A stretch of 64,000 bases of DNA from Anolis carolinensis (Eukaryota), in contig NC_085846.1 in assembly GCF_035594765.1 (NCBI RefSeq), positions 20,881,190 through 20,945,189 on the forward strand. Direction: 5' to 3'. Position 1 is the first letter of the stretch, and every line of letters begins with the position of its first letter. The notes beneath the pieces are model-generated. The model ran no database searches. It was given only the letters and a program-made list of their open reading frames with translations, and had not been told where the DNA came from. Shown here one piece after another: positions 4,501 to 53,907 of this stretch. The position numbers and the translations under genes are program-made.

Positions 4501-6798
4501 GTGATAGACCATGCAGATCAAGAATAGGTCTCTACAGTTACGGACCCACTCCCAAGACTCTACCCTTGGAAGACAATCATACTCAGTCACAAGGGATAGC
4601 CTATGATGATGATTAGATCAACGAATTCATTTGTCATGGATAACAGATAATTTTGATGAAATAATATTGATAATGTTAATAGGCCTGTTATCTGGTGTCT
4701 CTGTTTAGATTTTTGGTGAAGAAGAAGACCGGGAGGAAAGGTGATCATTCACTCTCCTTCCTTTTTCTTAGCTTTTGCAGCATTGAGTGCTTTATCTTTT
4801 CATACTATAATGCCCTCGCCTGACACTAGTCTTTCCATCCACCAAAGAACATACAACATATGTGTTAGTTTGTAATACTAGTTCCATTAATATGTCTTTC
4901 TTTGTTCTTCTTTTGCATTGGGAGTTTATCAAACAAGGTAAGCAAATCACATACAAAGCAGGACAGCAGTGTCGTGGTCTTATCACACAATGGCTCTCCT
5001 TTCCCATCATGCCCCCAGTGGGATATATTTGAAAGATGTTTCTTTTACAAAAAGAAGTCATTAACAGGTTATTCATGTTTGTAAAAAAACATTTCCAGGA
5101 TGTTTTCCAGCATGAGAATAGATGGAAAAGAATGATGTCAAGTGAAACATGAAAGGCAAAGATGCTATTGCCCTTCTATAATTTGCAATTTGTCTGCCTC
5201 ATGTGATAAACTCCTTAGTCATTTACATTTTGGCTTGTAGGATACAACCAAATACTGATTGTTGGATATGAAATCCATTAGTAGTAACTTCTGTCTAATT
5301 TATTTTCCATAGAATTTTATTCAAATAGGATACAAAGATAAATTAAAATAAAATTATTTTGCTATGAGAAGTTTCCAGAACCTATTTAAACTACCATGCT
5401 AAGCTATTTCTCTCCTCCAAACCATAGTCTTCATTTAGTTTCTGAAGAAGAGGAAAAAATGTTTTAGACAAATGAACAGTTGTAATTAGAACGCAAAGGA
5501 AAAATTAATTGATGTAACTTGAAGTCTTGTTTACATAAATATGCCAGTCTCAGATCATGCTGTGCCATAAGCAGATGAGAGGAACCTGCTGGACTGAGCA
5601 GAGCAAAATGCAGTATTGTGCAGAAAGAATAAAGGAGTGCACTAAAAAATTCCACAAGTACAGTAGCTGAAATGCATCTATTAGCATTCTTATTATAGCC
5701 AGTACGTTATGTTCCCAGAAATGTCAGCATTTATATTTTGCTTCCTTTTTCTTTCCTTCTTTCTTGGTCCACTCCTCTGGAAACATCTTTATTTTTGAAT
5801 GCACATATTGTGTTTGCAGACATTCACATCCACTGCAGGTTGTAAGTATGTAAATCTTATTTCAGTAATGGAAAGTATTTCTTCAATTATGTCCAGAAAA
5901 AATGTTTTTGTAGAATATGTTTATATGATTTAATGTTTTAAAGTGAAACATGATAAATTGTCAAGGGGGTATTTTCTATACAGGAAAGAAAAATAAAATA
6001 AATTTATTTTCCTTTGCTTTTATTGCATTTTGCAAAGACATAATCTGAGTGAATCTGGTAATATTCATTTTAAGAAATTAATTGCTTTAAGAAATGTGTT
6101 GGCTACATTGGTTTGCTGTCATGTCATATTATGTTCAATAACCATTTTGACAAATCATCAGCAACATTGTCAGCAACAGCACCTCCAACTTTAAATGTTT
6201 TTACATTTTAAGAGATTTTAAAGACATCTTTGTTATTAGGTGGTATGAAAATGTAACTGATCAATCAATATGCAGGTAGATGTTGTACCATCCAAAGGTA
6301 ATATAATTATCTCAATAAACATGAGTAGAAAAGCACCAGTGGAAGAAAGCTAAAATATGTCTGACAGTTCAAGATTCGTATAGGCACATGATAGTAGATT
6401 CAGATCTTAGGTAATTTGTTTTACAGATACATTCACAACTTCTTGCAAGGTGACCAGCATTGCATTTTAACATTGTAAAGTTAGACTGAAAGATAGTGAC
6501 CTGCTTGAAACATTCCAATGAACTGCATGGAATTTTACCCAAAAGCAGGAATTTGACCATAGCTTTTCAGACCTAAGATTAAATTCTTTTAGTCTCTCTA
6601 CTAAATTGCCTTAAAATACATTATAACAGAAGAGAAAGCACTTTGAGTTTGCTTAAACTTGAAATCAAAGGTATATAACACAACTATATATTGTTCCATT
6701 TATTCTTATCCAAAAGTAACCTGGGATCCTCTCACTTTGTTGCATCATGTTTTGGGAAACAGCTGTAGACAGATTTGCAGAGAAAATATTTACAATGT

Positions 6799-7027
6799 GT
6801 TGTCGAAAGCTTTCATGGCCAGAATCACTGAGTTGCTGTGAGTTTTCCAGAAGCATTCTCTCCTGACATTTTGCCCACATCTATGGCAGGCATCCTAAGA
6901 GTTTATAAAGTCTTCACAACCTCAGACTTCACAACTTCTGAAGATGCCTGCCTTAGAATTGGGTGAAATGTCGGGAAAGAATGCTTTAGGAACATGGCCA
7001 TACAGCCCGGAAAACTCACAGTAACCC
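6799..7027. mobile_element. Penelope-derived short insertion with an inverted (hairpin) structure
   Basis: 6829-6900 is the reverse complement of 6915-7027 and is homologous to 31910-32010. TSD AATATTTACAATGT (6785-6798) / AATATTTATAATGT (7028-7041). Confidence 0.7.
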
Positions 7028-7218
7028 AATATTTATAATGTCTGTCTTTTCCCCCTGCAGTGTATCACACTTCAATGCATTGTCTTTATTCATGCATTTC
7101 CTGAATTTTGTATTTTCTTGAGTGCATCAAAATGTTGCTTTCTTCTGTGAAGACTACCCTTCATTCTGTAATATGAGCATGATTATTCTTTCATTTTTCT
7201 GTAGATCCTTTGACCAAT

Positions 7219-10172
7219 ATGAAATTGGAAAACCAGACCAGAGTGCAGGAGTTTCTTCTTCTGGGCTTTCCCACTTTCATGGAATTTCAAAGGAGGTAAC
7301 TGAGGCACCTGTCTGTTCGAACTTGTGGGATTCGTTTCAGCTTGTTCGCCCGGATGACGTGGACAGGATCCTTGGGGCGGTGAGAGCGACCACTTGCTCT
7401 GCAGACCCTTGCCCCTCGTGGCTAATTAAATCGGCCAGAGGAGGGTTGGTAGAGTGGTTTGTGATGATAATTAATGCCTCTTTGGATCAAGGCAAATTTC
7501 CATCTGTCCTCAAACAGGCCATAGTGAGGCCTATATTGAAGAAGGCCTCCCTTGATTCGGCCATTCTAAACAACTACAGACCAATCTCGAACCTCCCTTT
7601 CTTGGGCAAGGTCCTGGAGCGGGTGGTTGCCTCGCAGCTCCAGGGTTTCCTGGATGACACCGATTTTCTGGACCCATCGCAGTCTGGCTTTAGACCTGGG
7701 CACAGTACTGAGACGGCTTTGGTCGCCTTGGTGGATGACCTCCGCAGGGAGCTGGACAGGGGGAGTGTGACCCTGCTGGTTCTCTTGGACATCTCAGCGG
7801 CTTTCGATACCATCGACCATGGTATCCTTCTGGGACGGCTCTCCGGGATGGGCCTTGGGGGCATGGCTCTGTCGTGGCTTCAGTCCTTCCTGGAGGGCCG
7901 TTCCCAGTTGGTGAAGCTGGGGGACACCTGCTCAGACCCCTGGCCTTTGACCTGTGGGGTCCCGCAAGGTTCCATTCTGTCCCCCATGCTTTTTAACATC
8001 TACATGAAACCGCTGGGAGAGGTCATCCGGAGTTTTGGAGTTCGGTGCCATCTCTACGCAGATGACACTCAACTCTACTACTCCTTTCCACCGAACTCCA
8101 AGGAAGCCCCCCAGATACTGAACCAGTGCTTGGCAGCTGTGATGGGCTGGATGAGGGCGAATAAGCTGAAGCTTAATCCCGACAAGACAGAGGTCCTCCA
8201 GGTCAGTCGTATGTCCGATCGGGGTATTGGGTGGCTACCTGTGCTTGACGGGGTCGCACTCCCCCTGAAGGCGCAGGTCCGCAGTTTGGGGGTCCTCCTG
8301 GACTCAGCACTGACGCTTGATGCTCAGGTGTCGGCCGTGGCCGGGAGGGCCTTTGCACAATTGAAACTTGTGCGCCAACTGCGACCTTACCTCGTGAAGT
8401 CTGATCTGGCCACGGTGGTCCATGCCTTAGTTACCTCTAGACTGGACTATTGCAATGCACTCTACGTGGGGCTGCCCTTGAAGACGGCCCGGAAACTCCA
8501 ACTAGTTCAACGTTCGGCAGCCTTGCTTCTAACTGGAGCAAATTATAGGGAGCGGTCAACCCTCCTGCTTAAGGAGCTCCACTGGCTGCCGTTCACCTTC
8601 CGGACCCAATTCAAGGTGCACGTGATCACCTACAAAGCCCTGAACGGTTTGGGACCCTCCTACCTTAGTGATCGCCTCTCGCCCTACGAACCTGCACGAT
8701 CTCTTCGTTCGTCGGGGGAGGCCCTCCTCTCGCTCCCACCTCCGTCACAAGCACGGTTGGTGGGGACGAGAGAGAGGGCCTTCTCCGTGGTGGCCCCCCG
8801 GCTCTGGAACTCGCTCCCCAGGGAAATCAGGCAAGCCCCCACCCTGGTAGCATTCAGAAAGAGCTTGAAAACCTGGCTCTTTACTCAAGCCTTTAGATAA
8901 AGATTGCTCATCCAGAAGCAACCTGTATCTGTGACCATTCTTGTACCGGTTTGCACCTTTTACCTTTGTCAACTCGATATAGACACAGGGTCTATTCCCA
9001 TCCCAATTTGCACTTCCAGAATTTGCAGCACTTTATCAGTCACCTCGTGTCTACAATATTTATATGGTGCACCTTACCCAGTCTACTTTTACAATCTCTC
9101 AGTTTTAATCCATGTTTTTATTAGTTCTTGTTTTTTATTGGCTAATGTTTTATTTTATTTTTTTATTTTTTTATTGTGCAAGTTGTTGTCTATTGCTGTG
9201 TTTTATACTGCTACTGTTTTTATTCGGGCTTGGCCCCATGTAAGCCGCCCTGAGTCCCCTTCGGGGAGATAGAGGCGGGGTATAAAAATAAAGTTATTAT
9301 TATTATTATTATTATTATTTCAAATACTGCTGTTTATAATATTCCTTATTGTTTATATCCTCACCCTGTTGGAGAACATTGTGATTATTATGCTGATAAG
9401 GATGAACAAACAACTTCATAAACCAATGTACTTTTTCCTCAGTCACCTCTCTTTCCTGGAAACTTGGTACATTTCTGTGACAGTTCCTAAACTCCTGGTT
9501 AACTTGGTCACAAAGAACAAAAGCATTTCTTATGAAGGATGCATGGCCCAGCTATACTTTTTCATATCTCTAGTCTGCACTGAGTGTGTCCTCTTGGCTG
9601 TCATGGCTTATGATCGTTATGTTGCTATTTGCAACCCTCTGCGTTATCCAGTTATTATGACTGCTCAATTTTGCTTGCACTTAGCTGTGGGGTCCTGGCT
9701 TACTGGCTTCCTCATTTCAATGTTAAAGGTCTTCTTCATATCCTGCTTGAATTTTTGTGGACCCAACACCATCAACCATTTCTTCTGCGATATCTCACCG
9801 CTGCTCAACCTCTCTTGCACAGACCGCACAGTGGCTGAGATGGTGGACTTTGTTTTTGCTCTCATTATCCTCATAATTCCACTGTCTGTCAACATTGGGT
9901 CCTATGTATGCATAATAGTAACCATTTTACATATTCCCACAACCCAAGGGAAAAAGAAAGCCTTTTCCACCTGTGCTTCACACCTCACTGTGGTTATGAT
10001 CTTCTTCTCAGCCACCCTCTTCATGTACGCTCGACCCAAGAGAATCCATTCTTTTGATCTCAATAAGCTTGTTTCAGTTGTGTACACTATTGTCACACCC
10101 ATGTTGAATCCCTGCATTTACTGTCTAAGGAATCAAGATGTAAAGGAAGCCCTGAAAAAAGTTTTTTTGTAG
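7219..10172 (+). pseudogene. OR6B1-like: OR6B1-like olfactory receptor disrupted by an L2 insertion (coding parts 7219-7291 and 9325-10172)
   Basis: ATG at 7219 gives MKLENQTRVQEFLLLGFPTFMEFQ. The frame resumes after the L2 tail as [20 protein letters not shown]...PMYFFL...[10 protein letters not shown]...KAFSTC...[12 protein letters not shown]. Removing the insert and one ATTTCAAA gives an intact 921-bp ORF (306 aa). Splice acceptor TTTTTCTGTAG at 7204. Confidence 0.92.
7292..9316 (+). mobile_element. 5'-truncated L2-clade LINE with an uninterrupted RT reading frame to 8900
   Basis: Motifs NYRPISNL, LLDISAAFDTIDH, GVPQGS, YADDTQLY, SRLDYCN and LHWLP. AATAAA at 9287 plus a (TTA)n tail. TSD ATTTCAAA at 7284-7291 and 9317-9324. 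Confidence 0.95.
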
Positions 10173-11049
10173 TTTGTAGAATGTCACCACAGTCATCTGT
10201 ACTGACCATTAGAGTCATATAAGATAGACAATAATAATGGAGTGAAGTAAAATTGATTGCAGGCGGAGAAGAATAATGATCAAGGGAAAGGAGGTACTCT
10301 GTGCCATCTAATGTAGTGTTGGAAAAATGATGTCACTCTTTCCCATATTATTCATCTAATGGTCAATGTTGTATCAATTAAAATTTCCCTATTTTCTTCC
10401 CACTTCCCTGAAGATGACATGGTTTTCCCTTTTCACTAAAGCCATTTTTAAAGCTATTGCTGGAAACACCCAAGAAGTCCTCCTCACTCCTTCTCTCCCC
10501 ATCTCCCAGCTCAGTTGTCGCATGGCCTATGTCCGACCTTTCCCATAAAATAATTCAAATTGTTTCCAATACTAATCAGATTTTCCAAGAGTAGTCTATT
10601 CCATTATTTCTTAGGTTAGTCAATATGAAGGAACCAACAATTTCACTGCTAATTTGCTTGTGAGCTGGCACAAAGTTTCCCATTGGCTTTCTCCGTTTCT
10701 TTCTTTCCTGGAGACTTACTAGGGATTCAAAGCCAATAATTCAGGTATCAGTACATTGTATGGCACAAGTCTTGTCCACATCAAAGATTTTCTGTTGCTG
10801 TTTTTCTATTGTAAAAAAGATGTAGAAATGTGTTCCCAAAATGTGTTCCTCTATGTTAAGTATTTGATGTTCTATATGATGAAAAGTGTCATGAATTCGT
10901 CTTTCCTATGTGAATTAATCATGCAACTGAGATTCATAAGCATTTTACAATTACAATACATGTAATTCTGACTTTATATGAAATCATTGGATGGATGAAG
11001 TGTGAGTAACAATGGCATGAAAGTTCAGTAAACATCAGTGATAGCTATC

Positions 11050-12157: not shown

Positions 12158-13001
12158 AGAATCATAGAATCATAGAATCATAGAATAGTAGAGTTGGAAG
12201 AGACCACATGGGCCATCTAGTCCAACCCCCTGCTAAGAAGCAGGAAATCGCATTCAAAGCACCCCCGACAGATGGCCATCCAGCCTCTGCTTAAAAGCCT
12301 CCAAGGAAGGAGCCTCCACCACGGCCCCGGGGAGAGAGTTCCACTGTCGAACAGCTCTCACAGTGAGGAAGTTCTTCCTGATGTTCAGGTGGAATCTCCT
12401 TTCCTGTAGTTTGAAGCCATTGTTCCGTGTCCTAGTCTGCAGGGCAGCAGAAAACAAGCTTGCTCCCTCCTCCCTATGACTTCCCCTCACGTATTTGTAC
12501 ATGGCTATCATGTCTCCTCTCAGCCTTCTCTTCTGCAGGCTAAACATGCCCAGCTCTTTAAGCCGCTCCTCATAGGGCTTGTTCTCCAGACCCTTAATCA
12601 TTTTAGTCGCCCTCCTCTGGACGCTTTCCAGCTTGTCAACATCTCCCTTCAACTGCGGTGCCCAAAATTGGACACAGTATTCCAGATGTGGTCTGACCAA
12701 GGCAGAATAGAGGGGTAGCATGACTTCCCTGGATCTAGACGCTATGCCCCTATTTATGCAGGCCAGAATCCCGTTGGCTTTTTTAGCAGCCGCATCACAT
12801 TGTTGGCTCATGTTTAACTTGTTGTCCACGAGGACTCCAAGGTCTTTTTCGCACACACTGCTGTCAAGCCAGGCGTCCCCCATTCTGTATCTTTGATTTC
12901 CATTTTTTCTGCCGAAGTGAAGTATCTTGCATTTGTCCCTGTTGAACTTCATTTTGTTAGTTTTGGCCCATCTCTCTAGTCTGTCAAGATCGTTTTGAAT
13001 T
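12158..13001 (-). mobile_element. Young 5'-truncated CR1 LINE
   Basis: Stop-free ORF2 C-terminus (IQNDLDRL...[13 protein letters not shown]...RRLRGD...LDGHLSGVL*) and an (ATTCTATG)n tail. Confidence 0.95.
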
Positions 13002-13914
13002 AAAGAGTCAGTACTACCCATCCCCCACATCTCACAAAATATTTAACAAGAAACTTATATCTCACATGTATCATTTAAGTCCCATCTACACCGCCATATA
13101 AATTCCAGTTTATCTGCTTTGAGCTGCATTATATGGCAGTGTAGACTCATATAATCTATTTGAAACAAGATAACCTGGATTATCTGATTTGATAATCTCT
13201 ATTATATGGCAATTTAGATCCAGCCATAGTTGCATCTCTGTGGCTCCAGATGCTATCCTTTAAACCTAGTGTGCCTCCACCCCCAGTATGGTCATTTTCA
13301 TTATCTTATAGACAGGAAATGTTGTGACAGTGATAAGCAGGCATCAATATGGATCTCAAGGGGAAACTCAGGCCTCAGCTACACTGTTGGAAAAAATCTG
13401 GATGCATCTACAGTCTGGAATGAATACAATGCCACAACTCTTTATTTGCCGTAGCTCAAAGCTGTGGAACTTATTCATTTTTTCTGAGGAAATGAATCGT
13501 TGTAATAGCCCATTGAGAAGACACATTCGCTCAAGTAATCCCATTTTTATTTAAAATGACACCCAGCTCTATTGGTTCACATAGCCCAAAGTATATTTCC
13601 CTGTTGCTACAGATCTCATTCAGAGAAAAATACTAGGTCTTTGATCTTCTTTGCCAAAGAGTGGTGGTGCCTCACCAAACTACAACTCACAGGATTCCAT
13701 GGTAGTTAAAGTAATGTCAAACTGCATTATTTCTACAGTGAAGATTGCACATTTGTTCCAACCATTTCTACCATTTCTTTCATGTCTTCTGTTTCTTTGG
13801 AAGCATGAAACAAGAAGCCCCCTCTCCACACAAAAATCTGCTTGACACGAAAGCCTGCTTTTGTGTACATCCAAGCTTGCCTCCTTGCCTTGGAAAGAGA
13901 ATGTATGTGTTGCA

Positions 13915-14183: not shown

Positions 14184-14407
14184 AAATGAAAGAACCGAAA
14201 ACAGTCCTCTCAATTTCGGGAAGCTTACAAATAACTGATCAGGGACTCCAAACGAAAGCTGGGACACAAAATGGGCCAAGATTTCCCCTGAATGCACATG
14301 TCTAGTGTAGATGCACCCTGTAGATTCAACTGGTTTAGCTTGGTCTGCCTAATAGATTTCTAAATAAATTAGATATGTCATTTTTGAGAACCAATGTTTT
14401 CCAAAAA

Positions 14408-14730
14408 CAGTAGAGTCTCACTTATCCGAACTTCGCTTATCCAACCTTCTGGATTATCCAAGCTATTTCTGTAGTCAATGTTTTCAATATATCGTGATAT
14501 TTTGGTGCTAAATTCGTAAATACAGTAATTACAACATAACATTACTACGTATTGAACTACTTTTTCTGTCAAATTTGTTGTATAACATGATGTTTTGGTG
14601 CTTAATTTGTAAAATCATATGCTAATTTGATGTTTAATAGGCTTTTCCTTAATCCCTCCTTATTATCCAAGATATTCGCTTATCCAAACTTCTGCCGGCC
14701 CATTTAGTTTGGATAAGTGAGACTCTACTG
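14408..14730. mobile_element. pogo/Tigger-like (Tc1/mariner superfamily) MITE
   Basis: TIR CAGTAGAGTCTCACTTATCC at both ends; right flank TA. Confidence 0.9.
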
Positions 14731-16746
14731 TAGTACTAAATCCTCACCATTACCCTTGGTTCCTAGCTATGTAAATGGGCATTGGTTTAGGTTTTGTTAA
14801 TGCAATCACCTTTCAAATGTTTGTAAACTGCATCTATAGAATGTGAACTAGAATAGGAAAATATCAAATGATAAGGCAGGATTTGTATTTTGCCTGCTAA
14901 GTTTACAGAGGCATTCCCTGAACAGAGAAAGTAAACTTTTTGCTCCCTTGATGATTTTAGGAGGCAGGACAACTTTAGCTTGTAATTCTTATACCCTTCC
15001 ACCAAGTGCATTGTTCTTTCTGAACAGTGTGATTTGACAGCATTGTGAGAATTTCTTACTATAGCTTCTTATTGAAATAGGACTTTTATTGGATTAACAG
15101 ATATTTACTCAGATGAAGTTGCAGCTTAGGTGAGGAGTCAAGATGAGCTGTCTTGAAAACAGTTCCAAGTTTAACTTCATCTTATTTTTTTTAAAACTAC
15201 ACAAGATTTTTAAAAACTGTTCAAGGTATAACCAAATGTTACTTAGAAAATAATGTGAAGCATTCTTTGGAAGTTCACCTGAAACTCAGGTAAATGATGA
15301 ATTCATTTTTACTTGTTTCACTCATTTTGCTTCTCTGGTTTAGCAAATATAAAATATGATTGTACATTACATTTAGCACTAAAATGATGACTGAGAAAAA
15401 TAGTAAGGACAAGGAGAGAAAATCAATGATGGAAGAGACATGACAATAATGAGAGATTTGAATTTAAATTAGAGAAATGTGTATGAAAGATTGACAGCTC
15501 TACAAGTGTTTTTTTCATGCAGAGTGAAGTTTTACCACTTTTCCCATGTCATCACAGCTTTCAATTTGGAATTACATGTCGAGCAGGGAAACTATACGCA
15601 TATGTGTTCAGAAATAACTTAATCATATTTATTTTGCTTACTCTCAACTGTGTTTAGATTTGCAGTCATATGTCATTGAAAAATGTAATGCAGTACAACT
15701 ACTATCTAGAAGTGTAGCTTGATCTTCCCATTGCAATATTCTGTGTCAGGGTCTCTTCTTGAATCATCAAACTTTCTCCAATACAACTTATTGACCACTT
15801 TATAGGACATGCCATTTTGATTTCTTTAGTTATGCAATGATTAAATCAATACCTGACTCATAAGCTTCTATTTCATATAGCAGCAAATAATGTTATTGTT
15901 ATGACAGGTATTGTGATGAATGAGTTTGCATCTAGATTTTGTAACATATAGAAACATGCTAGAATCATTAGGAATTAGGTTAGTCTTGATGTATTATTCC
16001 ATTAATTTCAGTGGATGTATTGACACTTAATGGGTTTAAATCCATTAATCCCAACTACAGAAGCAATTGAAATTGCAGGGTTAGAATAAATGGTATATAA
16101 AATGAAAAGCCTATATGAAATATGTGAGTTATGGGATGTATTACATGCAGAATATAAACTATCAAAACAGCATATGAGTTATGTAGTTTATGAGAATGCT
16201 GAAGATTTGATTAAGATAAAAATTCTTACTAGCTAATAGCTATAGAAATTATTAGGAATAGTAGCTCCTGGTAATGATATATCTTTAATCTGAGATGAAT
16301 TTTCATGAAATGTGAAATTAGCCACATTTATGTGTATTATTCTACATAATATTTTGCATGCAACCCAACTCCAATTTTTCTTTAGGAATGCCAAAGTCAC
16401 ATATTAGCTTTATAGATCATAGTTATTAAAATATTACATTTCTTGTATTTTAGAAATAATTGTGTTAACACTAAATTATAGCAGTAAAATTGTAAGAAAT
16501 AAACATTGTCCTAATATCCTATGGTGAAGTAGAAACCATCTGATATAAATTAATTATTATACCTAATCATAAATTAGTTCAATTTTTTTTAGTGTTTGAT
16601 TTTAGTTATTTTCACTTAGGTTGGACGTTTGAGGGGGTTGCTTTGCTTGTAACCAAGAGGAGCTGGCAGCTCTCACTAACAAACATGTAGATAATTTGTA
16701 GCTCTAAAAATTAGTACAAAATAATTTTAAAGATGAGAAAAATATG

Positions 16747-17140: not shown

Positions 17141-18112
17141 ATGGACCATAAGAATAAGAGCACTGCCAAAGTGTTTGTCTTGCTTGGCTTTCCAACTTCC
17201 ATGGAACTTCAAGTGGTTCTCTTTGTTATATTCCTTGTAGCCTACATTTTGACACTCCTGGAAAATGTTATTATCATTGCTGTGATCAAAACCAACCCTT
17301 ATCTTAATAAACCCATGTATTTTTTCCTCAGCAACCTCTCCTTCCTAGAATCATGGTACATTTGCGTCATTGTTCCTAAGTTACTGGTCAACTTCCTAGT
17401 GAAAGAAAATACCATCTCCTTTGAAGGCTGCATGACCCAGCTCTACTTTTTCAGTTCCCTCATCTGTACAGAATGTGTTCTTCTGGCAGTAATGGCCTAT
17501 GATCGATATGTGGCCATCTGCAACCCATTGCGCTATTCGACCATCATGACCCAACATTTCTGCATGCAGTTAGCAGTGGGTTCATGGATAACTGGATTTG
17601 TGGCTTCAATGTTGAAGGTTGTCTTCATATCTCGACTGCCCTTTTGTGGTCCTCACATCATCAACCACTTCTTCTGTGACATTTCACCCTTGTTACATAT
17701 GGCATGTGAAGATATGACAGTGGCTGAAATAGTGGACTTTGTTTTGGCTTTAATAATTCTGTTAATCCCATTGACAGTAACGATCATTTCATACATCTGC
17801 ATTATCAGAACAATTCTGGGTATTCGTTCTGCCCAGGGCCAGAAGAAGGCTTTCTCCACATGTGCTGCCCACCTCACTGTAGTCACAATCTTCTTCTCAG
17901 CTGCCCTCTTCATGTATGCAAGGCCAAAAAGAATCCATCCTTTCAATCTTAACAAATTGGTTTCTGTTGTATATACCATTGTAACGCCAATGTTGAACCC
18001 TTTCATTTACTGTTTGAGAAATCAAGAGATAAAGGGGGCTGTGAAGAAAGCTTTCCGTACCCACCAATCCCTGTCTCAAAACTTTGTGCCTAAGGTTGAA
18101 TGGGTCAAATAA
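17141..18112 (+). CDS. OR6B1-like: Olfactory receptor, family 6 (OR6B1-like), intact, 323 aa
   Basis: N-glycosylation sequon [31 protein letters not shown] and PMLNPFIYCLRN. Acceptor CTTATAG just before the ATG. Close paralogue of the disrupted gene at 7219. Confidence 0.95.
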   Translation: MDHKNKSTAKVFVLLGFPTSMELQVVLFVIFLVAYILTLLENVIIIAVIKTNPYLNKPMYFFLSNLSFLESWYICVIVPKLLVNFLVKENTISFEGCMTQLYFFSSLICTECVLLAVMAYDRYVAICNPLRYSTIMTQHFCMQLAVGSWITGFVASMLKVVFISRLPFCGPHIINHFFCDISPLLHMACEDMTVAEIVDFVLALIILLIPLTVTIISYICIIRTILGIRSAQGQKKAFSTCAAHLTVVTIFFSAALFMYARPKRIHPFNLNKLVSVVYTIVTPMLNPFIYCLRNQEIKGAVKKAFRTHQSLSQNFVPKVEWVK

Positions 18113-18363: not shown

Positions 18364-18674
18364 CAGTAGAGTCTCACTTATCCAACACTCGCTTATCCAA
18401 CATTCTGGATTATCCAATGCATTTTTGTAGTCACATCATGATATTTTGGTGCTAAATTAGTAAATACAGTAATTACTACGTAGCATTACTGCGTATTGAA
18501 CTACTTTTTCTGACAAATTTGTTGTATAACATGATGTTTTGGTGCTTAATTTGTAAAATCATAACCTAATTTGATGTTTAATAGGCTTTTCCTTAATCTC
18601 TCCATATCATCCAACATATTCGCTTATCCAACGATCTGCTGGCCCGTTTACGTTGGATAAGCGAGACTCTACTG
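18364..18674. mobile_element. pogo/Tigger-like MITE (same family as 14408)
   Basis: TIR CAGTAGAGTCTC(A/G)CTTATCCAAC with TA TSD on both sides. Confidence 0.9.
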
Positions 18675-18752
18675 TATAATTGTGAACAAAGCTCCATGAA
18701 AAATCAGCACAATTCATTCTTATTCTCTGTGACAGCATCCAACCATTCACAT

Positions 18753-27256: not shown

Positions 27257-28266
27257 TCACGTTGATATCCTTTGCTCTAGCCACGTATTAAGATGAAAGA
27301 GAGCATCTGGGTTTGTAACTCTAAACTGAAAATATTTTTGTTCAATTTTGCAAATAAATTTTCTCAAGGCATCCTTGACATCCTTATTTCTTAGACTATA
27401 TATGAGAGGGTTGGATATGGGGGGAAGAACTGTGTATAACAAAGCAAAGATTTTGTTCAGAATTTTTATGGTTTCCATTTTTGGTATCAAATATACAATA
27501 ACAATGGCTTCGTAAAACATACAAACAACAATAAGGTGAGAAGAACAGGTTGAAAAGGCTTTTTTACTTCCAGTGGTAGATGGGATTCTCAAGATGTCAG
27601 AAATTATATATACATAGGAGATCAGTGTCAAAAGAAAAGGAGGGACGCTAAATACAAAAGCCACTGTTAATGTTATAAGGGCTAAAACTCTGCTGCAACT
27701 CCAGGAAAGTGTCCCCACTGCATATGCTTCACAAAAAAGTGGTCAATTTCACGGGGAGCACAATAATGTAGCCCTTCTAGCTCTAAAGGCAAGTACACAG
27801 AGAAAAAGACAATGCTGTTAATCCAAGAAAAACACACCAACTGGATACAGAATTTGCCATTCATAAGAGTTGCATAATGAAGAGGTCTGCATATTGCTAA
27901 GAGACGATCATAAGCCATCACAGAAAGCAGATAACATTCGGTACCCATTAGAAGATTTATAACATAGCACTAAGTCATGCATCCTTTGAAAGAGATGCTT
28001 TTGTCCCCTGTCACCAAACAGGCAAGCATCTCGGGCAGAATGGCTGAGCTGGAGAGGATCTCCAAACAAGACAAATTCACCAGAAAGAAGTACATGGGCG
28101 TGTGGAGGTGCTGATCAGTTACTATCAGAAGAATGGCGAGGAACTTGGCAATCAATGTTGAAATGTAGACTATGCAGCAGAGAACGAACAGCAATGTCTG
28201 TAGATGAGGTAGTTCCCCAAAACCCAAAAGAATATACTTAGTGATATCACTCTGGTTTCTTTGAAT
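27257..28266 (-). pseudogene. Olfactory receptor pseudogene, tandem paralogue of 32756-33697
   Basis: Start codon ATG>ATT at 28266 (IQRNQSDIT versus MQRNQSDIT). In-frame TAG at 27970-27972 where the paralogue has Gln. 1-nt frameshift in the T-run after DHFF (about 27735). C-terminus extended past the paralogue stop. Confidence 0.92.
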
Positions 28267-32755: not shown

Positions 32756-33697
32756 TTAGGAATGGCCTTTCACAATCTTCCCAACAACCTTTCTTAGAGC
32801 TTCCTTGACATCCTTGTTTCTCAAACTATATATGAGGGGGTTGGCTATGGGAGGCAGGACTGTGTAGAAGAAAGAAAATATTTTTCTCATAGTTTTTGTT
32901 CTTTCCATTTTTGGTATACAATATACAACAACAATTGCACCATAGAAAATAGAAACCACAATCAAGTGAGAAGAGCAGGTTGAAAAAGCCTTTTGCCGCC
33001 CAGTGATAGATGGGATTCTCAGAATGGCAGAAATTATATATACGTAGGAGATTATGGTAAAAAGAAAAGGAGGAAAACTGAATATAAAACCCAGGGTCAC
33101 AGTGACAAATGGCAAGATTTTGATGTGACTACAGGAAAGTGTTCCCAGCTCAGATGCATCACAGTAGAAGTGATCGATTTCACTGGGATTACAATAGTGC
33201 AGTCCCTCTAATACCAAAGGCAAATATAAGGAGGTAAACAAAATACTATTTATCCAAGAGCCACCAGCTAACTGGATACAGAACTTGCCATTCATTATGG
33301 TTGTATAATGAAGAGGTCTACATATTGCTAAGAAGCGATCATAAGACATTACAGAAAGAAGATAACACTCTGTTGCTCCCAGGAAAGAGAAGAAATAAAA
33401 CTGTGCAATGCATCCTTTGACAGAGATGGTTTTGTCTCCTGTCACCAAACTGGTCAGCAGCTTTGGCAGGAAGGATGAGCTGTATAAGATTTCCAAACAA
33501 GACAAATTCACCAGAAAGTAGTACATGGGTGTGTGAAGGTGCTGTTCAGCCATTATCAGAAGAATGGTAAGCATGTTGGCAGTCAGTGTTGAAATGTAGA
33601 TGGTGAAAAACAGAAGGAACAGGAAGGTCTTCAGAGAATGTAGCTCCCCCAAACCCTGAAGAATAAACTCAGTGATGTCACTCTGATTTCTTTGCAT
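32756..33697 (-). CDS. Olfactory receptor (family 6/11-like), intact, 313 aa
   Basis: NQS sequon, LHTPMYYFL, MSYDRFLAIC, IDHFYCD, KAFSTCSSH and NPLIYSLRN. Confidence 0.95.
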   Translation of the reverse strand: MQRNQSDITEFILQGLGELHSLKTFLFLLFFTIYISTLTANMLTILLIMAEQHLHTPMYYFLVNLSCLEILYSSSFLPKLLTSLVTGDKTISVKGCIAQFYFFSFLGATECYLLSVMSYDRFLAICRPLHYTTIMNGKFCIQLAGGSWINSILFTSLYLPLVLEGLHYCNPSEIDHFYCDASELGTLSCSHIKILPFVTVTLGFIFSFPPFLFTIISYVYIISAILRIPSITGRQKAFSTCSSHLIVVSIFYGAIVVVYCIPKMERTKTMRKIFSFFYTVLPPIANPLIYSLRNKDVKEALRKVVGKIVKGHS

Positions 33698-34417: not shown

Positions 34418-35215
34418 TCATAGAATCATAGAATCATAGAATCGTAGAGTTGGAAGAGACCTCACGGCCCATCCAGTCCAACCCCCTGCAAGAAGCAGGA
34501 AAATCTCATTCAAAGCACCCCCAACAGATGGCCATCCAGCCTCTGCTTAAAAGCCTCCAAAGAAGGAGCCTCCACCACAGTCTGGGGGAGAGAGTTCCAC
34601 TGCCGAACAGCTCTCATAGTGAGGAAGTTTTTCCTGATGTTCAGGTGGAATCTCCTTTCCTGTAGTTTAAAGCCATTGTTCCACGTCCTAGTCTGCAGGG
34701 CGGCAGCAAACAAGCTCGCTCCCTCACATATTTGTACATGGCTATCATGTCTCCTCTCAGCTTTCTCTTCTGCAGGCTAAACATGCCCAACTCTTTAAGC
34801 CGCTCCTCATAGGGCTTGTTCTCCAGACCCTTGATCATTTTAGTCGCCCTCCTCTGGACACCTTCCAGCTTGTCAATATCTCCCTTCAACTGCGGTGCCC
34901 AGAATTGGACACAGTATTCCAGGTGTGGTCTGACCAAGGCAGAATAGAGGGGGAGCAAGACTTCCCTGGATCTAGATGCTATACCCCTATTTATGCAGGC
35001 CAGAATCTCGTTGGCTTTTTTAGCAGCCGCATCACATTGTAGGCTCATGTTTAACTTGTTGTCCACGAGGACTCCAAGGTCTTTTTCACACATACTGCTG
35101 TCGAGCCAGGCATCATCCCCCATTCTGTATCTTTGCATTTCATTTTTTCTGCCAAAGTGAAGTATCTTGGATTTGTCCCTGTTGAACTTCATTTTGTTAG
35201 TTTCGGCCCATCTCT
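34418..35215 (-). mobile_element. 5'-truncated CR1 LINE
   Basis: Near-identical to 12158-12975, with an (ATTCTATG)n tail. A 19-bp deletion between CCCTC direct repeats at about 34725 shifts the frame. Confidence 0.95.
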
Positions 35216-36818: not shown

Positions 36819-39362
36819 CTAAGACTTACCGTGTCCCCAAAAAACCTCTGCAGGGGTGGGGGACCCATTAAGATGGTCCGCCCCAGGAGACTGATGGATC
36901 CTAATGGATTCCTGACATCTCTTGGGGATTCTCCTGTCTTGGGTGCTGATGATCTTGTCGATGCCTTGGTAGATCGCTATAATAGCGAGATGTCTAGGGC
37001 AATTGACACGATCGCTCCCAAACGTCCCCTTCTTGTTGCGCAGAGTCACTTCGGCTCCCTGGTTCACGGAGGAGCTGGCAGTGATGAAGCGCTCGAGGAG
37101 GGGACTAGAGTGCTACTGGAGGAAAATTTGTAGCATTGCTGACCGAGCACGGGCTAGAGCCGCTATTAGGGCCTACTCCGCGGCTTTGCGGGCAGCCAGG
37201 AAGATCTTCACAACTGCCCGCATAGCGTCTGCAACTAACAGACCATCTGAGTTGTTTCGGGTCGTCGGGGAGCTTTTTCACCCTCCTGAAGGTGGGGAGG
37301 CACCCGAAGACTCGGCAACTCGATGCAGCGAGTTCGCGCACGACTTTGCAGACAGTTGCTCAGATTCGCTTCGACTTGGACGCTAGTTTTGTTGCAATGC
37401 CAAAGGAGGTAACCGAGGCACCTGTCTGTCCATATTTGTGGGATTCGTTTCAGCCCGTTCACCTGGATGATGTGGACAAGATCCTTGGAGTTGTGAGGGC
37501 GACCACTTGTGCCATGGATCCTTGCCCTTCTTGGTTTATAAAATTGGCCAGAGGAGGATTGGGAGATTGGTTTGTGAGCATAATAAATGCCTCATTGGTT
37601 CAAGGCAAATTTCCATCTGCCCTAAAACAGGCTATAGTGAGGCCAATTTTGAAGAAAGCCTCCCTTGATTCAACCATCCTAAATAATTACAGACCAATCT
37701 TGAATCTTCCTTTTTTGGGCAAGGTCCTGGAGCGAGTGGTGGCTTCTCAGCTCCAGGGGTTCTTGGATGACACTGATTTTCTGGATCCATCACAATCCGG
37801 CTTTAGACCTGGGCACAGTACCGCATTGGTCGCCTTGGTGGATGACCTCCGCAGGGAACTGGATGGGGGAGTGTGACCCTACTGGTTCTCTTGGACATCT
37901 CAGCGGCTTTCGATACCATTGACCATGGTATCCTTCTGGGACGGCACTCCGGGATGGGCCTTGGGGGTACTGCTCTGCAGTGGCTCCAGTCCTTCCTGGA
38001 GGGCCGATTCCAGTCAGTGAAGCTGGGGGACACCTGCTCGGACCCCTGGCCATTGACTTGTGGGGTCCCGCAAGGTTCTATTCTCTCCCCCATGCTTTTC
38101 AACATCTACATGAAACCGCTGGGAGAGGTCATCCGGAGTTTTGGAGTTCGGTGCCATCTCTACGCAGATGACACCCAACTCTACTACTCTTTTCCACCAA
38201 ACTCCAAGGAAGCCCCTCGGGTACTGGACCAGTGCTTGGTCGCTGTGATGGGCTGGATGAGGGTGAATAAGCTGAAGCTCAATCCCGACAAGACAGAGAT
38301 CCTCCAGGTCAGTCGTACGTCTGATTGGGGTATTGGGTGGCAACATGTGCTTGACAGGGTCGCACTCCCCCTGAAGGCGCAGGTCCGCAGCTTGGGGGTC
38401 CTCCTGGACTCAGCGTTGACGCTTGATGCTCAGGTGTCGGCGGTGGCCGGGAGGGCCTTTGCACAACTAAAACTTGTGCGCCAGCTGCGACCATACCTCG
38501 TGAAGTCTGATCTAGCTACGGTGGTCCATGCCTTAGTTACCTCTAGGTTGGATTATTGCAACACACTCTACGTGGGGCTGCCTTTGAAAACAACCCGGAA
38601 ACTCCAACTAGTTCAGCGGGCGGCAGCCAGGTTCCTAACAGGAGCGAATTACAGGGAGCGATCTACTCCCCTGTTTAAGGAGCTCCTCTGGCTGCCGTTT
38701 ATTTTCCGGACCCAATTCAAGGTGCAGGTGTTGACCTGCAAAGCCCTGAATGGTTTGGGACCCACTTACCTTTCTGACCGCATCTCCCCCTATGAACCTG
38801 CATGATCCTTTCATTCATCGGGGGAGGCCCTCCTCTCGCTTCCGCCTCCGTCACAAGCGCAGTTGGTGGGGACGAGGGAGAGGGCCTTCTCCATGGCAGC
38901 CCCCCAGCTCTGGAACACGCTCCCCAGGGAAATTAGGCAAGCTGCCACCTTGGAAGTGTTCAGGAAGAGCCTGAAAACCTGGCTCTTCAAACAGGCCTTT
39001 GAGTAAGTACCGCCCACTATACGCGAAACCCTTGTACTAACGGTTACTTCTGACCAGTTGTACCTGTTGGTTAATCTCCTCGACATAGCCACAGGGTTCA
39101 CCCCAGTTTAAGGTTCTCCCCATGATCTCATAGCACCTTAACGTCCTTCATGTTTATACGTTTCACTCAGTGCACTTTGCCCAGTCCATTGTATGATTTT
39201 ATTGCTGTGTTTATCATGTATTTTATAATGACTGTGATTTTATTTTATGCCTTCTAATCTTATCTGTGTGTTTTTTGGTATTTGTTACTCTGTATGCTGG
39301 TTTTATATTTGTGAGCCGCCCCGAGTCCCTCTGGGGAGATGGTGGCGGGTTATAAAAATAAA

Positions 39363-39409
<47 letters not shown>

Positions 39410-40400: not shown

Positions 40401-40532
40401 GTCCACATTCACAAATGTATCAGTTTGATGGGAAGTAATGAAAAGATTAGATACTATTTTCCTCAATAATGGAGAACTGTGTGTTGCGTTGAAAAAATAG
40501 GTTGGCTCCATTTATGAAAAGGAAAGGAACTA

Positions 40533-40855
40533 CAGTAGAGTCTCACTTATCCAAGCTAAATGGGCTGACAGAAGCTTGGATAAGCGAATATCTTGGATAA
40601 TAAGGAGGGATTAAGGAAAAGCCTATTAAACATCAAATTGGGTTATGATTTTACAAATTAAGCACCAAAACATCATGTTATACAACAAATTTGACAGAAA
40701 AAGTAGTTCAATACGCAGTAATGTTATGTTGTAATTACTGTATTTACGAATTTAGCACCAAAATATCATGATATATTGAAAACATTGACTACAAAAGTGG
40801 CTTGGATTATCCAGAACCTTGGATAAGCGAGGCTTGGATAAGTGAGACTCTACTG
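40533..40855. mobile_element. pogo/Tigger-like MITE, in opposite orientation to 14408 and 18364
   Basis: TIR CAGTAGAGTCTCACTTATCCAAGC with TA TSD. Confidence 0.9.
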
Positions 40856-41293
40856 TAATTGGGATATATGTGGATATGGTGTCATTACTGAAATAGGTAC
40901 AAAATGCTAACTTGCTTTAAGAACAGTTTAAATCATTAAAATAAATGAGAACAAACATTTGCCTATCAAAGATTTTAAAATAATATTTTTACCAATGCTG
41001 CGAGATCAAGTTTTTTAACAGCTCAGTAAATCTACTATAACAGGAAATATGTCAATGACTTTCAGTTTCCATAGTGCCACTAATGCATTCAAAAATCATC
41101 CATATTTCCATAATTATTTTTTTTTATCCCCAGCAAATCACTAGTTGGAAAAAAGGTGTTTTATTGTGTTTTGATAACCCATGTGAACATGAGTTTGCCT
41201 GGGTTTGTTCTCTAGATAAAGTGAAAATTATGATAAACAGTTTAATAGGCAGGTTCTCAAGAAGACAGCAAATTTTTCAGGTTTTTCAACATA

Positions 41294-50227: not shown

Positions 50228-53200
50228 TTCCAGGAGGATGGCCTACTGGCAAGTGATGGGGTGCATCTCACATAAGTAGGAAAACACCTTTTTGCACACA
50301 GACTCACAAACCTCATCAGGCACACTTTAAACTAGATCCACTAGGGGAGGGGTACAACAGCCTTGCGAACAGGTTTTTACCCACAAACATGGAGAACTGC
50401 AAAAAGGATAAATGGAGGACTGCACAAACACAGCAAGGTCCAGGTACCAAGAATGTAATGATCCCAAATAAACAGTTCCGGGGAAGGTCACAGGGGCTTA
50501 CATGTCTTTACACTAATGCACAGAGCATGGGGAATAAGCAAGACAAACTCCAACTTTTAGCACAACACCACACTTATGATGTCATAGGCATCACTGAAAC
50601 CTGGTGGGATGACTCCCATCACTGGAATGTAGACATTGAGGACTATAACCTCTTTCACAGAAATAGAACAAAGGGGAGAGGAGGGGGAGTAGTTTTATAT
50701 GTCAAAAGGAGTTACGCTGCAGAAGACATGCAAGACTGCAATCCGGGAAACCAGCTTGAAAGCATCTGGATAAGAATCAAGGGAACTGTGACTCAAAAAG
50801 ATCTTGTTGTGGGTGTCTACTACAGACCTCCGAGCCAGGATGAAGGACTTAATTAAGGCTTCTGTCAAAAGTTGATGAAACAGGCACAAAGAAGAGATAT
50901 TGTAGTCATGGGCGATTTCAACTATCCCGATATCTGCTGGAAAACAAATTTGGCTGAGAGTACAAAGTCCAACAAATTCCTCGTTTGCCTTGCAGACAAT
51001 TTTATGGTCCAGAAGATAGAAGAGGCAACAAGGGGATCAGCTACTCTTGATCTCATCTTAACAAATGTGGAAGACCTGATCAATGCAATCGAAGTGGTTG
51101 GAACCTTAGAGGCAAATGACAATGTGCTCCTGCAGTTCGCCATACAAAGGAAGGCTGAAACTAAGACAAGTCAAACATGCATTCTGGACTTCAAGAGAGC
51201 TGACTTCCAAAAAATGAAGGAAATACTGAGCGGCATTCCATGGACTCCAATACTAAAAGACAAGAGAGTTAAGGATGGATGGGAGTTTTTCAAAAGTGAA
51301 ATACTTAAGGCGCAATTGCAAACAGTGCCAACAAAGAAAAAAAAATAAGACAAGTGTGAAGAAGCCAGAATGGATGTCCAAAGAGACTCAAAAGAGACAT
51401 GCACAAGAAGTGGAAAAGGGGAGAAATCACCAAAGAAGAATTCAAACAAATAGCCAACTCCTGTAGGGAAAAAGTTCTCAAGGCTAAAGCGCAAAACGAG
51501 CTCAGGCTTGCCAGAGACATTAAAAACAATAAAAAGGCCTTTTTTGCTTACGTCAGTAGAAAAAAGAAGAACAAGGAGGCGATAGGGCCTCTGCGAGGAG
51601 AAGATGGGGTGATGGTGACAGGGGACAGGGAAAAGGCAGAACTATTTAACGCCTTCTTTGCCTCTGTCTTCTCACAAAAAGAAAGCTGTCTTCAACCTCA
51701 GCAACATAGAATGAACAAAGGATTAGGGGAAATCCAACCCAAAATAGAGAAACAAGTTGTCCAGGAACACCTGGCTGCTCTAAATGAATTCAAGTCCCCA
51801 GGGCCAGATCAACTACATCCAAGAGTATTGAAGGAACTAGCAAAAGTTATTTCAGAACCACTGGCAATAATCTTTGAGAGCTTTTGGAGAACAGGAGAAG
51901 TCCCAGCAGATTGGAGGAGGGCGAATGTGGTCCCTATCTTCAAGAAGGGAAAAAAAGGACAACTCAAATAATTACCGTCCAGTCAGCCACACATCGATAC
52001 CAGGCAAGATTCTGGAAAAGATAGTTAAGGAAGTGGCTTGCGAACACTTAGAACACAAATGCAGTCATTGCTAATAGTCAACACGGATTTATCAAAAACA
52101 AGTTATGCCAGACTAATCTGATATCTTTTTTCGATAGAGTCACAAGCTGGGTCGATACAGGTAATGCTGTGGAAGTAGCGTATCTGGATTTCAGTAGGGC
52201 CTTTAACAAAGTCACCCATGACCTTCTGGCAAACAAACTAGTAAAATGTGGGCTAGATAAAACTACAGTTAGGTGGATCTGTAATTGGTTAAGTGAACAA
52301 ACTCAAAGGGTGCTCACCTATGCATTGTCTTCATCATGGAAAGAAGTGACAAGTGGAGTGCCACAGGGCTCCGTCCTGGGCCCGGTTCTGTTCAACATCT
52401 TTATTAACGACTTAGACAAAGGGTTAGAAGGCACAATCATTAAGTTTACAGACGACACCAAACTGGGAGGGATAGCTAACACTCCAGAAGACAGGACCAG
52501 AATCCAAAACGATCTTGACAGACTAGTGAGATGGGCCGAAACTAACAAAATGAAGTTCAAAGGGACAAATGCAAGATACTTCACTTTGGCAGAAAAAATG
52601 AAATACAAAGATACAGAATGGGGGACGCCTGGCTCGATAGCAGTATGTGTGAAAAAGACCTTGGAGTCCTCGTAGACAACAAGTTAAACATGAGCCAACA
52701 ATGTGGTGCGGCTGCTAAGAAAGCCAACAGGATTCTGGCCTGCAGCAATAGGAGTATAGCGTCTAGATCCAGAGAAGTCATGCTCCCCCTCTATTCTGCC
52801 TTGGTCAGACCACACCTGGAATACTGTGTCCAATTCTGGGCACCACAAATGAAGGGAGATGTTGACAAGCTGAAAGGTGTCCAGAGGAGGGCAACTAAAA
52901 TGATCAAGGGTCTAAATAAAACAAGCTGGGTTATTGAGGCCACAACTTCATTTTTGTTGGCCGGTTATAACCTCACTCTGACAACAAAAGTGGCCTTGTA
53001 TTTGTTTAAAGCTGCTAAAAGGAGATCAGAGTACATAGATCAGATTGGGGTGCAGTGCAGGGGAGATGAGGATAGTTGATGCATAGATCTTTAGCTAAAC
53101 TACATTGGCACCAAGCAGGCAGACACCTGTATATCTGTATTTTATTTTAAGTGAACCAGATGTATGTTGTATGTTGTTTTTGTATTGTCTGTCCTTGATA

Positions 53201-53671
53201 AGGCCAACTGGCTAATCAATAAATTGTTGTTGTTGATCAAGGGTCTGGAGAACAAGCCCTATGAGGAGTGGCTTAAAGAACTGGGCATGTTTAGCCTGCA
53301 GAAGAGAAGGCTGAGAGGAGACATGATAGCCATGTACAAATACATGAGGGGAAGTCATAGGGAGGAGGGAGCGAGCTTGTTTTCTGCCGCCCTGCAGACT
53401 AGGATGTGGAACAATGGCTTCAAACTACAGGAAAGGAGATTCCACCTGAACATCAGGAAGAACTTCCTCACCGTGAGAGCTGTTCGGCAGTGAAACTCTC
53501 TGCCTCGGACTGTGGTGGAGACTCCTTCCTTGGAGACTTTTAAGCAGAGGCTGGATGGCCATCTGTCGGGGGTGCTTTGAATGCGATTTCCTGCTTCTTG
53601 GCAGGGGGTTGAACTAGATGGCTCATGAGGTCTCTTCCAACTCTATTATTCTATGATTCTATGATTCTATG
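50228..53671 (+). mobile_element. CR1 LINE of 3.4 kb: ORF1 C-terminus plus degenerate full ORF2 (APE endonuclease and RT)
   Basis: DGLLASDGVHL (SGNH-esterase ORF1 end); YTNAQS, GITETW, GDFN and LDLIL (APE); NYRPVS, GVPQGS and FTDD (RT); (ATTCTATG)n tail. Several stops and frameshifts. Confidence 0.95.
52914..53233 (+). mobile_element. Non-LTR retroelement 3' fragment (possibly RTE-X-like) nested in CR1
   Basis: 13-bp TSD TGATCAAGGGTCT at 52901-52913 and 53234-53246. ORF end [25 protein letters not shown], then AATAAA and a (TTG)n tail. Confidence 0.8.
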
Positions 53672-53907
53672 AACATATCTGAATTTATCTCACAAAATGA
53701 ATATGTTTGCTCTATTTGTGCATTTAAGTCAAATTAATAGAGCCAAATGTCCTCTAAAAAAAGTAAGGTGATGTTTTCTGTGCCCACTCCCTCCTCTTTC
53801 ATATGAACTAAGGAAAGTTCTAATATAAGGTGTGATGCAATCAAGGAGGTTGTGGGGCCCATAATCTAACAGAGAGAGAAATCAAGCTTTCATACTAGGG
53901 TTTAGCT

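Follow-up and report, generated by a model that had tools for sequence, protein, structure and literature searches.

A recent and apparently rare L2-type LINE insertion in a conserved OR6B1-like olfactory receptor gene of Anolis carolinensis

The interrupted receptor gene

The DNA considered here is a stretch of 64,000 nucleotides from Anolis carolinensis (contig NC_085846.1, positions 20,881,190 to 20,945,189 of the forward strand; hereafter the window) that contains part of a cluster of olfactory receptor (OR) genes. The window belongs to the assembly rAnoCar3.1 (GCA_035594765.1, CM069372.1), which it matches with no mismatch in 14,954 bp, and it contains no N. At 7219-10172, the single coding exon of a class II OR gene is split in two by a truncated long interspersed element (LINE) of the L2 type, and the same site is empty in other animals of the species.

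Both pieces of the receptor are on the plus strand. The 5' piece (7219-7291) begins with an ATG at 7219 and holds codons 1-24, including an NQT glycosylation motif, together with the first base of codon 25. Its frame is translated as MKLENQTRVQEFLLLGFPTFMEFQ, ending at 7290/7291, and the product of codons 1-24 is identical to residues 1-24 of two database proteins, P0002 and P0003. The 3' piece (9325-10172) completes codon 25 with two more bases and carries codons 26-306 with the transmembrane helices TM1-TM7 and the PMLNPCIY motif, and the stop. When 7219-7291 is joined in a script to 9325-10172, the result is 921 nt, or 306 codons with a terminal stop only. The product is exactly P0002 (XP_003224587.1, from the annotation of the older assembly AnoCar2.0), and Ensembl entry H9GT74 is the same protein with three extra N-terminal residues.

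An earlier examination of the letters alone, referred to below as the sequence-only reading, had placed the receptor N-terminus (7219-7291) in another frame of an open reading frame (ORF) of 592 amino acids (aa) and the receptor body from 9325 onward, and had claimed that excision restores a 306-aa ORF free of stops and frameshifts. All of its coordinates and counts were correct. The 592-aa ORF (7122-8900) is the L2 reverse transcriptase (RT) frame extended backwards through the 5' end of the receptor, in a frame other than that of the receptor itself.

Between the two receptor pieces is a 5'-truncated L2-type LINE of 2025 nt (7292-9316, plus strand), which has the same orientation as the receptor gene. 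It is flanked on the left (7284-7291) and on the right (9317-9324) by copies of the target site ATTTCAAA, and these are the only two occurrences of this word within 7000-9500. The insert and one duplicate together account for 2033 nt of extra DNA. The last four bases of the left duplicate (CAAA, 7288-7291) are microhomology with the L2 at its truncation point. They are the element's own sequence upstream of GGAGG, and they are present as well in a second L2 copy of the window (37388-39400) and in the anole protein P0121, as ...PKEVTEAP. At the other end, the ATT at 9317-9319 is in phase with the (ATT)n tail of the element. Since both junctions have microhomology, the duplication is 8 bp at most and its true length could be shorter, which refines the flat 8 bp of the sequence-only reading. 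Microhomology at both junctions is common at LINE insertions.

Identity and constraint of the receptor

The receptor body (9327-10169) matches the Pfam profiles 7tm_4 (E=2.9e-51, 175 bits against a cut-off of 27) and 7tm_1 (E=5e-41), and the motifs KAFSTCxSHL and PMLNPxIY are readable. With this profile, these motifs and an ORF of about 310 aa, the gene is a class II OR gene. A word search showed that its 281-residue body is 100% identical to the A. carolinensis proteins P0001-P0003, which are named olfactory receptor 6B1 or 6B1-like. Of the 120 best matches listed, 119 are named OR6B1 or OR6B1-like, carry the generic name 'olfactory receptor' or are unnamed; the exception is one OR6A2-like protein. 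The identification as an otherwise intact, OR6B1-named receptor is thereby borne out, with the reservation that OR6B1 names in the databases are automatic and are carried alike by the interrupted gene and by a separate lineage described below. No mammalian sequence is among the listed matches of the receptor body, and the support for the resemblance to mammalian OR6B1 proposed by the sequence-only reading comes from these names.

The body is 95% identical to its counterpart in Anolis sagrei, 90% in Sceloporus, 84-87% in other lizards, snakes and the tuatara, and 83% in the alligator. For an olfactory receptor, such conservation is unusually high. The ratio of nonsynonymous to synonymous divergence (dN/dS) from the A. 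sagrei orthologue, a calculation that the sequence-only reading had proposed, is 0.125 (dS 0.20, dN 0.025) and points to constraint on the interrupted gene. By this comparison, purifying selection acted on the gene up to the time of the insertion. Of the receptor groups of 13 placental mammals, only three are strictly 1:1, and OR6B1 is among them (PMC4158756).

The insert

The part of the L2 that remains encodes the RT domain and the C-terminus of ORF2 (7293-8900, plus strand). The frame is open for 535 codons (7293-8897), without a stop or a frameshift, to the native stop at 8898-8900, and it matches Pfam RVT_1 (E=2e-37). It is identical in 531 of 535 residues to P0121, a 784-aa protein of A. 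carolinensis, with which it aligns from residue 250 to residue 784 and shares the C-terminus. At least 249 codons are thus missing from the start of ORF2, along with all that precedes them, so that the insert is 5'-truncated. Its long open frame and the mere four residues that separate it from another anole copy indicate that the insert is young. Thus, the claims that a 2.0-kb L2 had been inserted and that its frame is undamaged both held up, the former now with the hallmarks of target-primed insertion.

Contigs of the four public sequencing runs introduced below include thousands of pieces at least 99% alike to the insert. Its nearest RT relatives are proteins of the anole and of other squamates that are named 'reverse transcriptase domain' or 'transposon BS/jockey'. 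The anole relative P0191, which is 54% identical, has an Exo_endo_phos domain, and P0121 (99% identical) shows RVT_1 alone. The second L2 copy (37388-39400, plus strand) is an older, decayed member of a related L2 family with about 88% column identity, indels and a longer (ATT)n tail; it reaches further in the 5' direction than the insert does.

The 3' end of the insert consists of a predicted hairpin in the 3' untranslated region (9239-9284, plus strand), whose sequence block is conserved in the second copy, and, just downstream, of a short tandem repeat, the (ATT)8 microsatellite (9296-9319, plus strand), the last unit of which overlaps the right duplicate. The fold has an energy of -28.7 kcal/mol and a modest z score of -1.74. 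The tail is neither a poly(A) nor a CR1 octamer. We consider 'L2-clade' to be a well-supported label for the insert, on the basis of the tail type, the exclusion of CR1 and what is known of the LINE families of anoles. CR1 identity was ruled out by comparison with the CR1 copy at 12162-13030 (minus strand), which ends in ATTCTATG octamers and is only 28% identical to the RT C-terminus of the insert. Octamer repeats are the usual end of CR1 elements (PMC4316615). L2-clade LINEs of the stringent type depend on a tail built in this way to be recognised by their own ORF2 protein, which binds a 3' stem-loop (PMC4176376), and the predicted hairpin of the insert is where that stem-loop would be expected.

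Empty sites and polymorphism

Contigs (Logan) of four public runs were aligned to 6300-10900 of the window. Three of the runs (X1, X5 and X17) are from A. carolinensis and come from three studies; the fourth (X10) is from another organism that is about 2-3.5% divergent from the window. Each run has a contig that bridges the site without the insert. Record 2 of X1 aligns to 7001-7291 and 9329-10069, record 23 of X5 to 7002-7291 and 9329-10900, and record 16 of X17 to 7004-7291 and 9329-10085, in each case with four record letters between the two pieces; record 10 of X10 aligns to 7004-7289 and 9329-10897, with six letters between them. The four letters fit 9325-9328, positions within the stretch (9281-9328) that was skipped as a repeat. 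In the flanks, the bridging contigs of X1, X5 and X17 differ from the window by 0-4 letters. The X1 contig differs by a single letter over about 1 kb, and this near-identity implies that the insertion arose on a haplotype that is still circulating in the empty state. Among the pieces listed, none crosses 7291/7292 in X1, X5, X17 or X10, although contigs cannot prove absence.

In A. sagrei, the orthologue is a single uninterrupted exon of 921 bp that reads ...GGAATTTCAGATACT... at the site. The older A. carolinensis assembly, AnoCar2.0, was approached through its protein models. Nine equivalent excisions would yield its protein and none of them has canonical splice ends, so that the models most likely derive from an empty site; from these models, AnoCar2.0 is itself most likely empty at this position. 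The filled allele has therefore been seen once, in rAnoCar3.1, and the site is empty in three resequenced animals and, as just argued, in the old reference.

The insertion is very recent and is polymorphic in A. carolinensis, in which the filled site and the precise empty site both exist. The five genomes sampled suggest in addition that the filled allele has a low frequency in the population. An old or fixed pseudogene was considered and was ruled out by the empty sites in three conspecifics, in the close relative and in A. sagrei. The sequence-only reading had supposed that the event was very recent and perhaps polymorphic, and had proposed a search for an empty-site allele in several individuals and related species. 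Such alleles were found in X1, X5, X17, X10 and A. sagrei, which agrees with that supposition, and the insertion, rather than being shared by distant species, is absent from A. sagrei and X10. In 13 genomes of A. carolinensis, 11,210 polymorphic L2 insertions have been reported, with full-length copies making up less than 7%; taken together, the LINE polymorphisms are mostly low-frequency singletons with signs of negative selection (PMC5389967).

The same contigs display some other patterns. Two letters in the receptor, 9751 A>G (Asn167Ser) and 10070 T>C (synonymous), are changed in X5, X17 and the relative X10 and unchanged in X1, and further single-base variants within A. carolinensis are at 10263 and 10866; the insertion-bearing haplotype shares the state of X1 at the variant sites. 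The contigs of X17 have an inserted GATC at 6402, 6724, 7203, 9611, 9997 and 10277. Rather than real variation, they seem to be ligation junctions that were filled in when a Hi-C-type library was made. About 150-450 bp upstream of the receptor start codon is a very high-copy repeat (6762-7069), with a summed contig depth of 10^5-10^6 in all four runs and many internal joints at about 6843-6996. It may be an element like a short interspersed element (SINE) or one of variable length, and the unique contigs of all of the runs break there.

The paralogue at 17141

An intact tandem paralogue of 323 aa is present at 17141-18112 (plus strand). It is 75% identical to the interrupted gene, matches 7tm_4 with E=1.6e-55 and has a dN/dS of 0.081 relative to A. 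sagrei, which retains the same tandem pair on one chromosome. The relationship of the two genes was examined in a quick IQ-TREE analysis of 42 receptors, with branch support from the SH-like approximate likelihood ratio test (SH-aLRT) and with P0002 standing in for the interrupted gene. The interrupted gene groups with squamate genes (SH-aLRT 97), next to one from the tuatara, and is clearly separate from the window's four other receptors. The 17141 gene belongs to another squamate clade (97), joined by a further tuatara gene (95). Genes of turtles, crocodilians and birds attach on both sides, which we call lineage A (the interrupted gene) and lineage B (the 17141 gene).

The paired genes of each species make it clear that there are two lineages in most sauropsids. 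The deeper forks have a support of 85-88 and the outgroup branches are long, and the exact branching order is thus unsure. This tree indicates that lineages A and B split before lepidosaurs diverged from turtles and crocodilians. A phylogeny with the receptor protein and the 17141 gene had also been proposed by the sequence-only reading; here, with sauropsid genes, the receptor does not group away from OR6B1-named genes. The idea that 17141 is a recent tandem duplicate and serves as a spare copy was ruled out, as it belongs to a separate lineage common to tuatara, turtles, crocodilians and birds.

These results bear on the suggestion that loss of the interrupted gene is tolerated because its paralogue is intact. 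The paralogue is indeed intact. However, the two genes belong to separate ancient lineages and both are constrained, which makes redundancy a weak explanation, and buffering by 17141 is doubtful. A rare allele needs no argument from tolerance.

The current gene model

The NCBI model on rAnoCar3.1 is P0001, a protein of 306 aa named 'olfactory receptor 6B1' with a gene span of 7219-10172. At residues 20-22 it reads FPT-LLL-FQ, and the true allele reads FPT-FME-FQ; the LLL is read from the ATT tail of the L2. The protein can be obtained only by skipping 2033 nt with the ends TT..TT, TT..TA, TC..AT or CA..TT, all of which are non-canonical. A canonical intron behind the annotated models is thus ruled out, given that every excision that gives P0001 or P0002 has non-canonical ends. 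The 'intron' of P0001 is an artefact of protein-guided modelling, and it hides the disruption.

All pairs of GT/GC-AG and AT-AC ends were also scanned. Seventeen combinations keep the frame, and only one of these, which has a weak acceptor, keeps TM1 as well as the N-terminus.

Other elements in the window

The remainder of the window contains several other elements. Three CR1-type LINE fragments (12162-13030, minus; 34418-35114, plus; 52561-53672, minus) are 90-95% alike, and the first, the octamer-ending copy mentioned above, keeps an open C-terminal ORF of 258 aa. This similarity and the open ORF show that the receptor cluster also contains a CR1 family of fairly young age. A short interspersed repeat is found at 14394-14734, 18435-18676 and 40529-40869, in both orientations and 91-93% alike, and one of its copies is just downstream of the 17141 receptor.

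An OR pseudogene at 27257-28227 (minus strand) is broken into at least three frames, with fragments of 85, 88 and 153 aa, and has about 80% DNA identity to an intact receptor at 32756-33697 (minus strand). It follows from this likeness that an older tandem duplication has lost one of its copies to decay. At the edge of the OR cluster, 62222-63025 (minus strand) contains a 267-aa ORF that matches Pfam 7tm_3 (E=1.5e-81) and is the transmembrane exon of a family C receptor of the V2R/taste type.

Discussion

The analysis shows how the site is built, that it is empty in other genomes, that the copy is young and that the gene was constrained in the past. From this, we infer that target-primed reverse transcription placed a copy of an active L2-clade LINE of A. 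carolinensis in codon 25 of a class II OR gene with a single exon, which represents a sauropsid-wide 'OR6B1-like' lineage in the anole. Synthesis would have been primed at a nick in ...ATTTCAAA..., starting from the (ATT)n tail, and would have ended about 2 kb into the element, where the 5' end would have been joined at the 4-nt microhomology (CAAA), with the duplication of up to 8 bp of target. The filled allele is on the haplotype assembled as rAnoCar3.1 and absent from the other anole genomes sampled, and would segregate at a low frequency. The copy has no promoter, ORF1 or endonuclease and is hence no longer mobile. The receptor frame of the filled allele runs to ...MEFQRR and then meets a stop, after 26 codons. 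Such a frame gives no seven-helix receptor and, unless the insert is spliced out, would make a null allele; the loss of function is thus what we predict from the sequence. Taken as a whole, a recent and rare L2 insertion that made a null allele of a conserved OR gene is an explanation in which we have high confidence.

Several points weigh against this explanation. The filled junctions depend on the assembly and on the hallmarks of insertion, and the right junction is inside the masked stretch 9281-9328. The joint 7291>9325 is not among the 15 joints listed and was read from the two-piece contig alignments. Contigs show presence and not absence, and X1, X5 and X17 could each carry a heterozygous filled allele. 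The empty site of AnoCar2.0 was deduced from protein models and not from DNA, the frequency estimate comes from very few genomes, and L2-clade is a label given by the criteria above.

The rival explanations differ in what they make of the filled allele. It might be common or even fixed in some population of A. carolinensis, with a loss that is tolerated, or favoured, and that the 17141 paralogue buffers. Null alleles of receptors commonly segregate in vertebrates, the paralogue is intact and constrained, and five sampled genomes leave room for such a population. However, each of the three resequenced individuals, from three studies, has an uninterrupted contig and AnoCar2.0 gave the protein of an empty site, while genes A and B are ancient and separately retained, with the dN/dS of 0.125 given above for gene A. 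The LINE polymorphisms of this species, as noted above, are mostly singletons under negative selection (PMC5389967). Nothing supports a common, tolerated loss, and we regard it as improbable. Still less probable is that the insertion is an artefact of the assembly or library, or a somatic event, instead of a germline allele. The missing read support for the filled junctions and the empty state of all of the other genomes examined would both be expected if this were so, but joining by chimerism would not explain why the target site is duplicated precisely, why the 5' truncation falls at a microhomology and why the element ends exactly in its own (ATT)n tail, and the flanks are collinear with, and identical to, independent contigs.

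The last rival accepts the insertion and concerns its effect. As the P0001 model implies, the insert might be spliced out as an intron and the receptor might still be made. The NCBI annotation of this same assembly does have an 'olfactory receptor 6B1' of 306 aa that spans 7219-10172, and the L2 junction happens to make a good donor (GAG|GTAACT at 7296) that, with the AG at 9274, keeps the frame and would yield a product of 324 aa with 18 extra residues before TM1. In that case, the L2 copy would be a newborn intron, the allele would encode an altered receptor and not a null, and the locus would be a segregating gain of an intron by LINE insertion in an intron-less OR gene. The 18 residues, in part a leucine run from the ATT tail, could then lie between the glycosylated N-terminus and TM1. 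The P0001 model itself needs the non-canonical gap described above and takes its LLL from the tail, however. The acceptor of the only frame-keeping GT-AG pair that retains TM1 is in a purine-rich stretch without a pyrimidine tract, and the insert has a sense-orientation AATAAA at 9287. We consider it very unlikely that the P0001 receptor is still made in this way, and the newborn intron with its altered 324-aa product seems just as far-fetched.

A recent null allele made by an L2 has some practical consequences. The reference assembly rAnoCar3.1 carries what would be a knockout allele of a very conserved OR, and in the annotated protein three residues are wrong (LLL in place of FME), an error that is inherited by gene-family counts, orthology tables and selection scans based on P0001. 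The locus is also a clean and datable case in which an L2 family that is still active disrupted, in a natural population, a gene under constraint, and it is consistent with the view that LINE insertions in anoles occur often, are harmful and stay at low frequency. Animals with the allele would provide a natural knockout of one OR6B1-like lineage member; human OR6B1 had no known ligand as of 2014 (PMC4158756).

Neither the mechanism nor the population pattern is new. The locus combines two known kinds of events, a polymorphic truncated L2 in an anole and a segregating OR null allele. What is particular is that the target belongs to a very conserved sauropsid lineage and that the allele stands in the reference genome under a misleading gene model. 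The closest parallel is the polymorphic L2 elements of A. carolinensis surveyed by Ruggiero, Bourgeois and Boissinot (2017, PMC5389967), which are the same kind of element in the same species and, like this insert, are 5'-truncated with an intact 3' end, young and rare. However, the word 'exon' is absent from the text of that survey and insertions into coding exons are not discussed there, whereas the insert described here interrupts a conserved receptor within its coding exon and is an allele that the reference has and the population lacks.

As an element, the insert resembles the L2-clade LINEs UnaL2 and ZfL2-1/2 (PMC4176376) in having no poly(A) and in ending with a hairpin followed by a short tandem repeat; it differs from them in its repeat unit, which is ATT, and in that its hairpin is a prediction, with the modest z score given above. 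With the CR1 LINEs of amniotes it shares a related RT, 5' truncation and a microsatellite tail, but CR1 differs by its octamer end. As an allele, it resembles the segregating OR null alleles of vertebrates, in which an intact and a disrupted allele of one gene are likewise found in a single species. Here, however, the disruption is a retrotransposon and not a point mutation or a small indel, and the target is unusually conserved, being 83-90% identical across squamates, tuatara and alligator.

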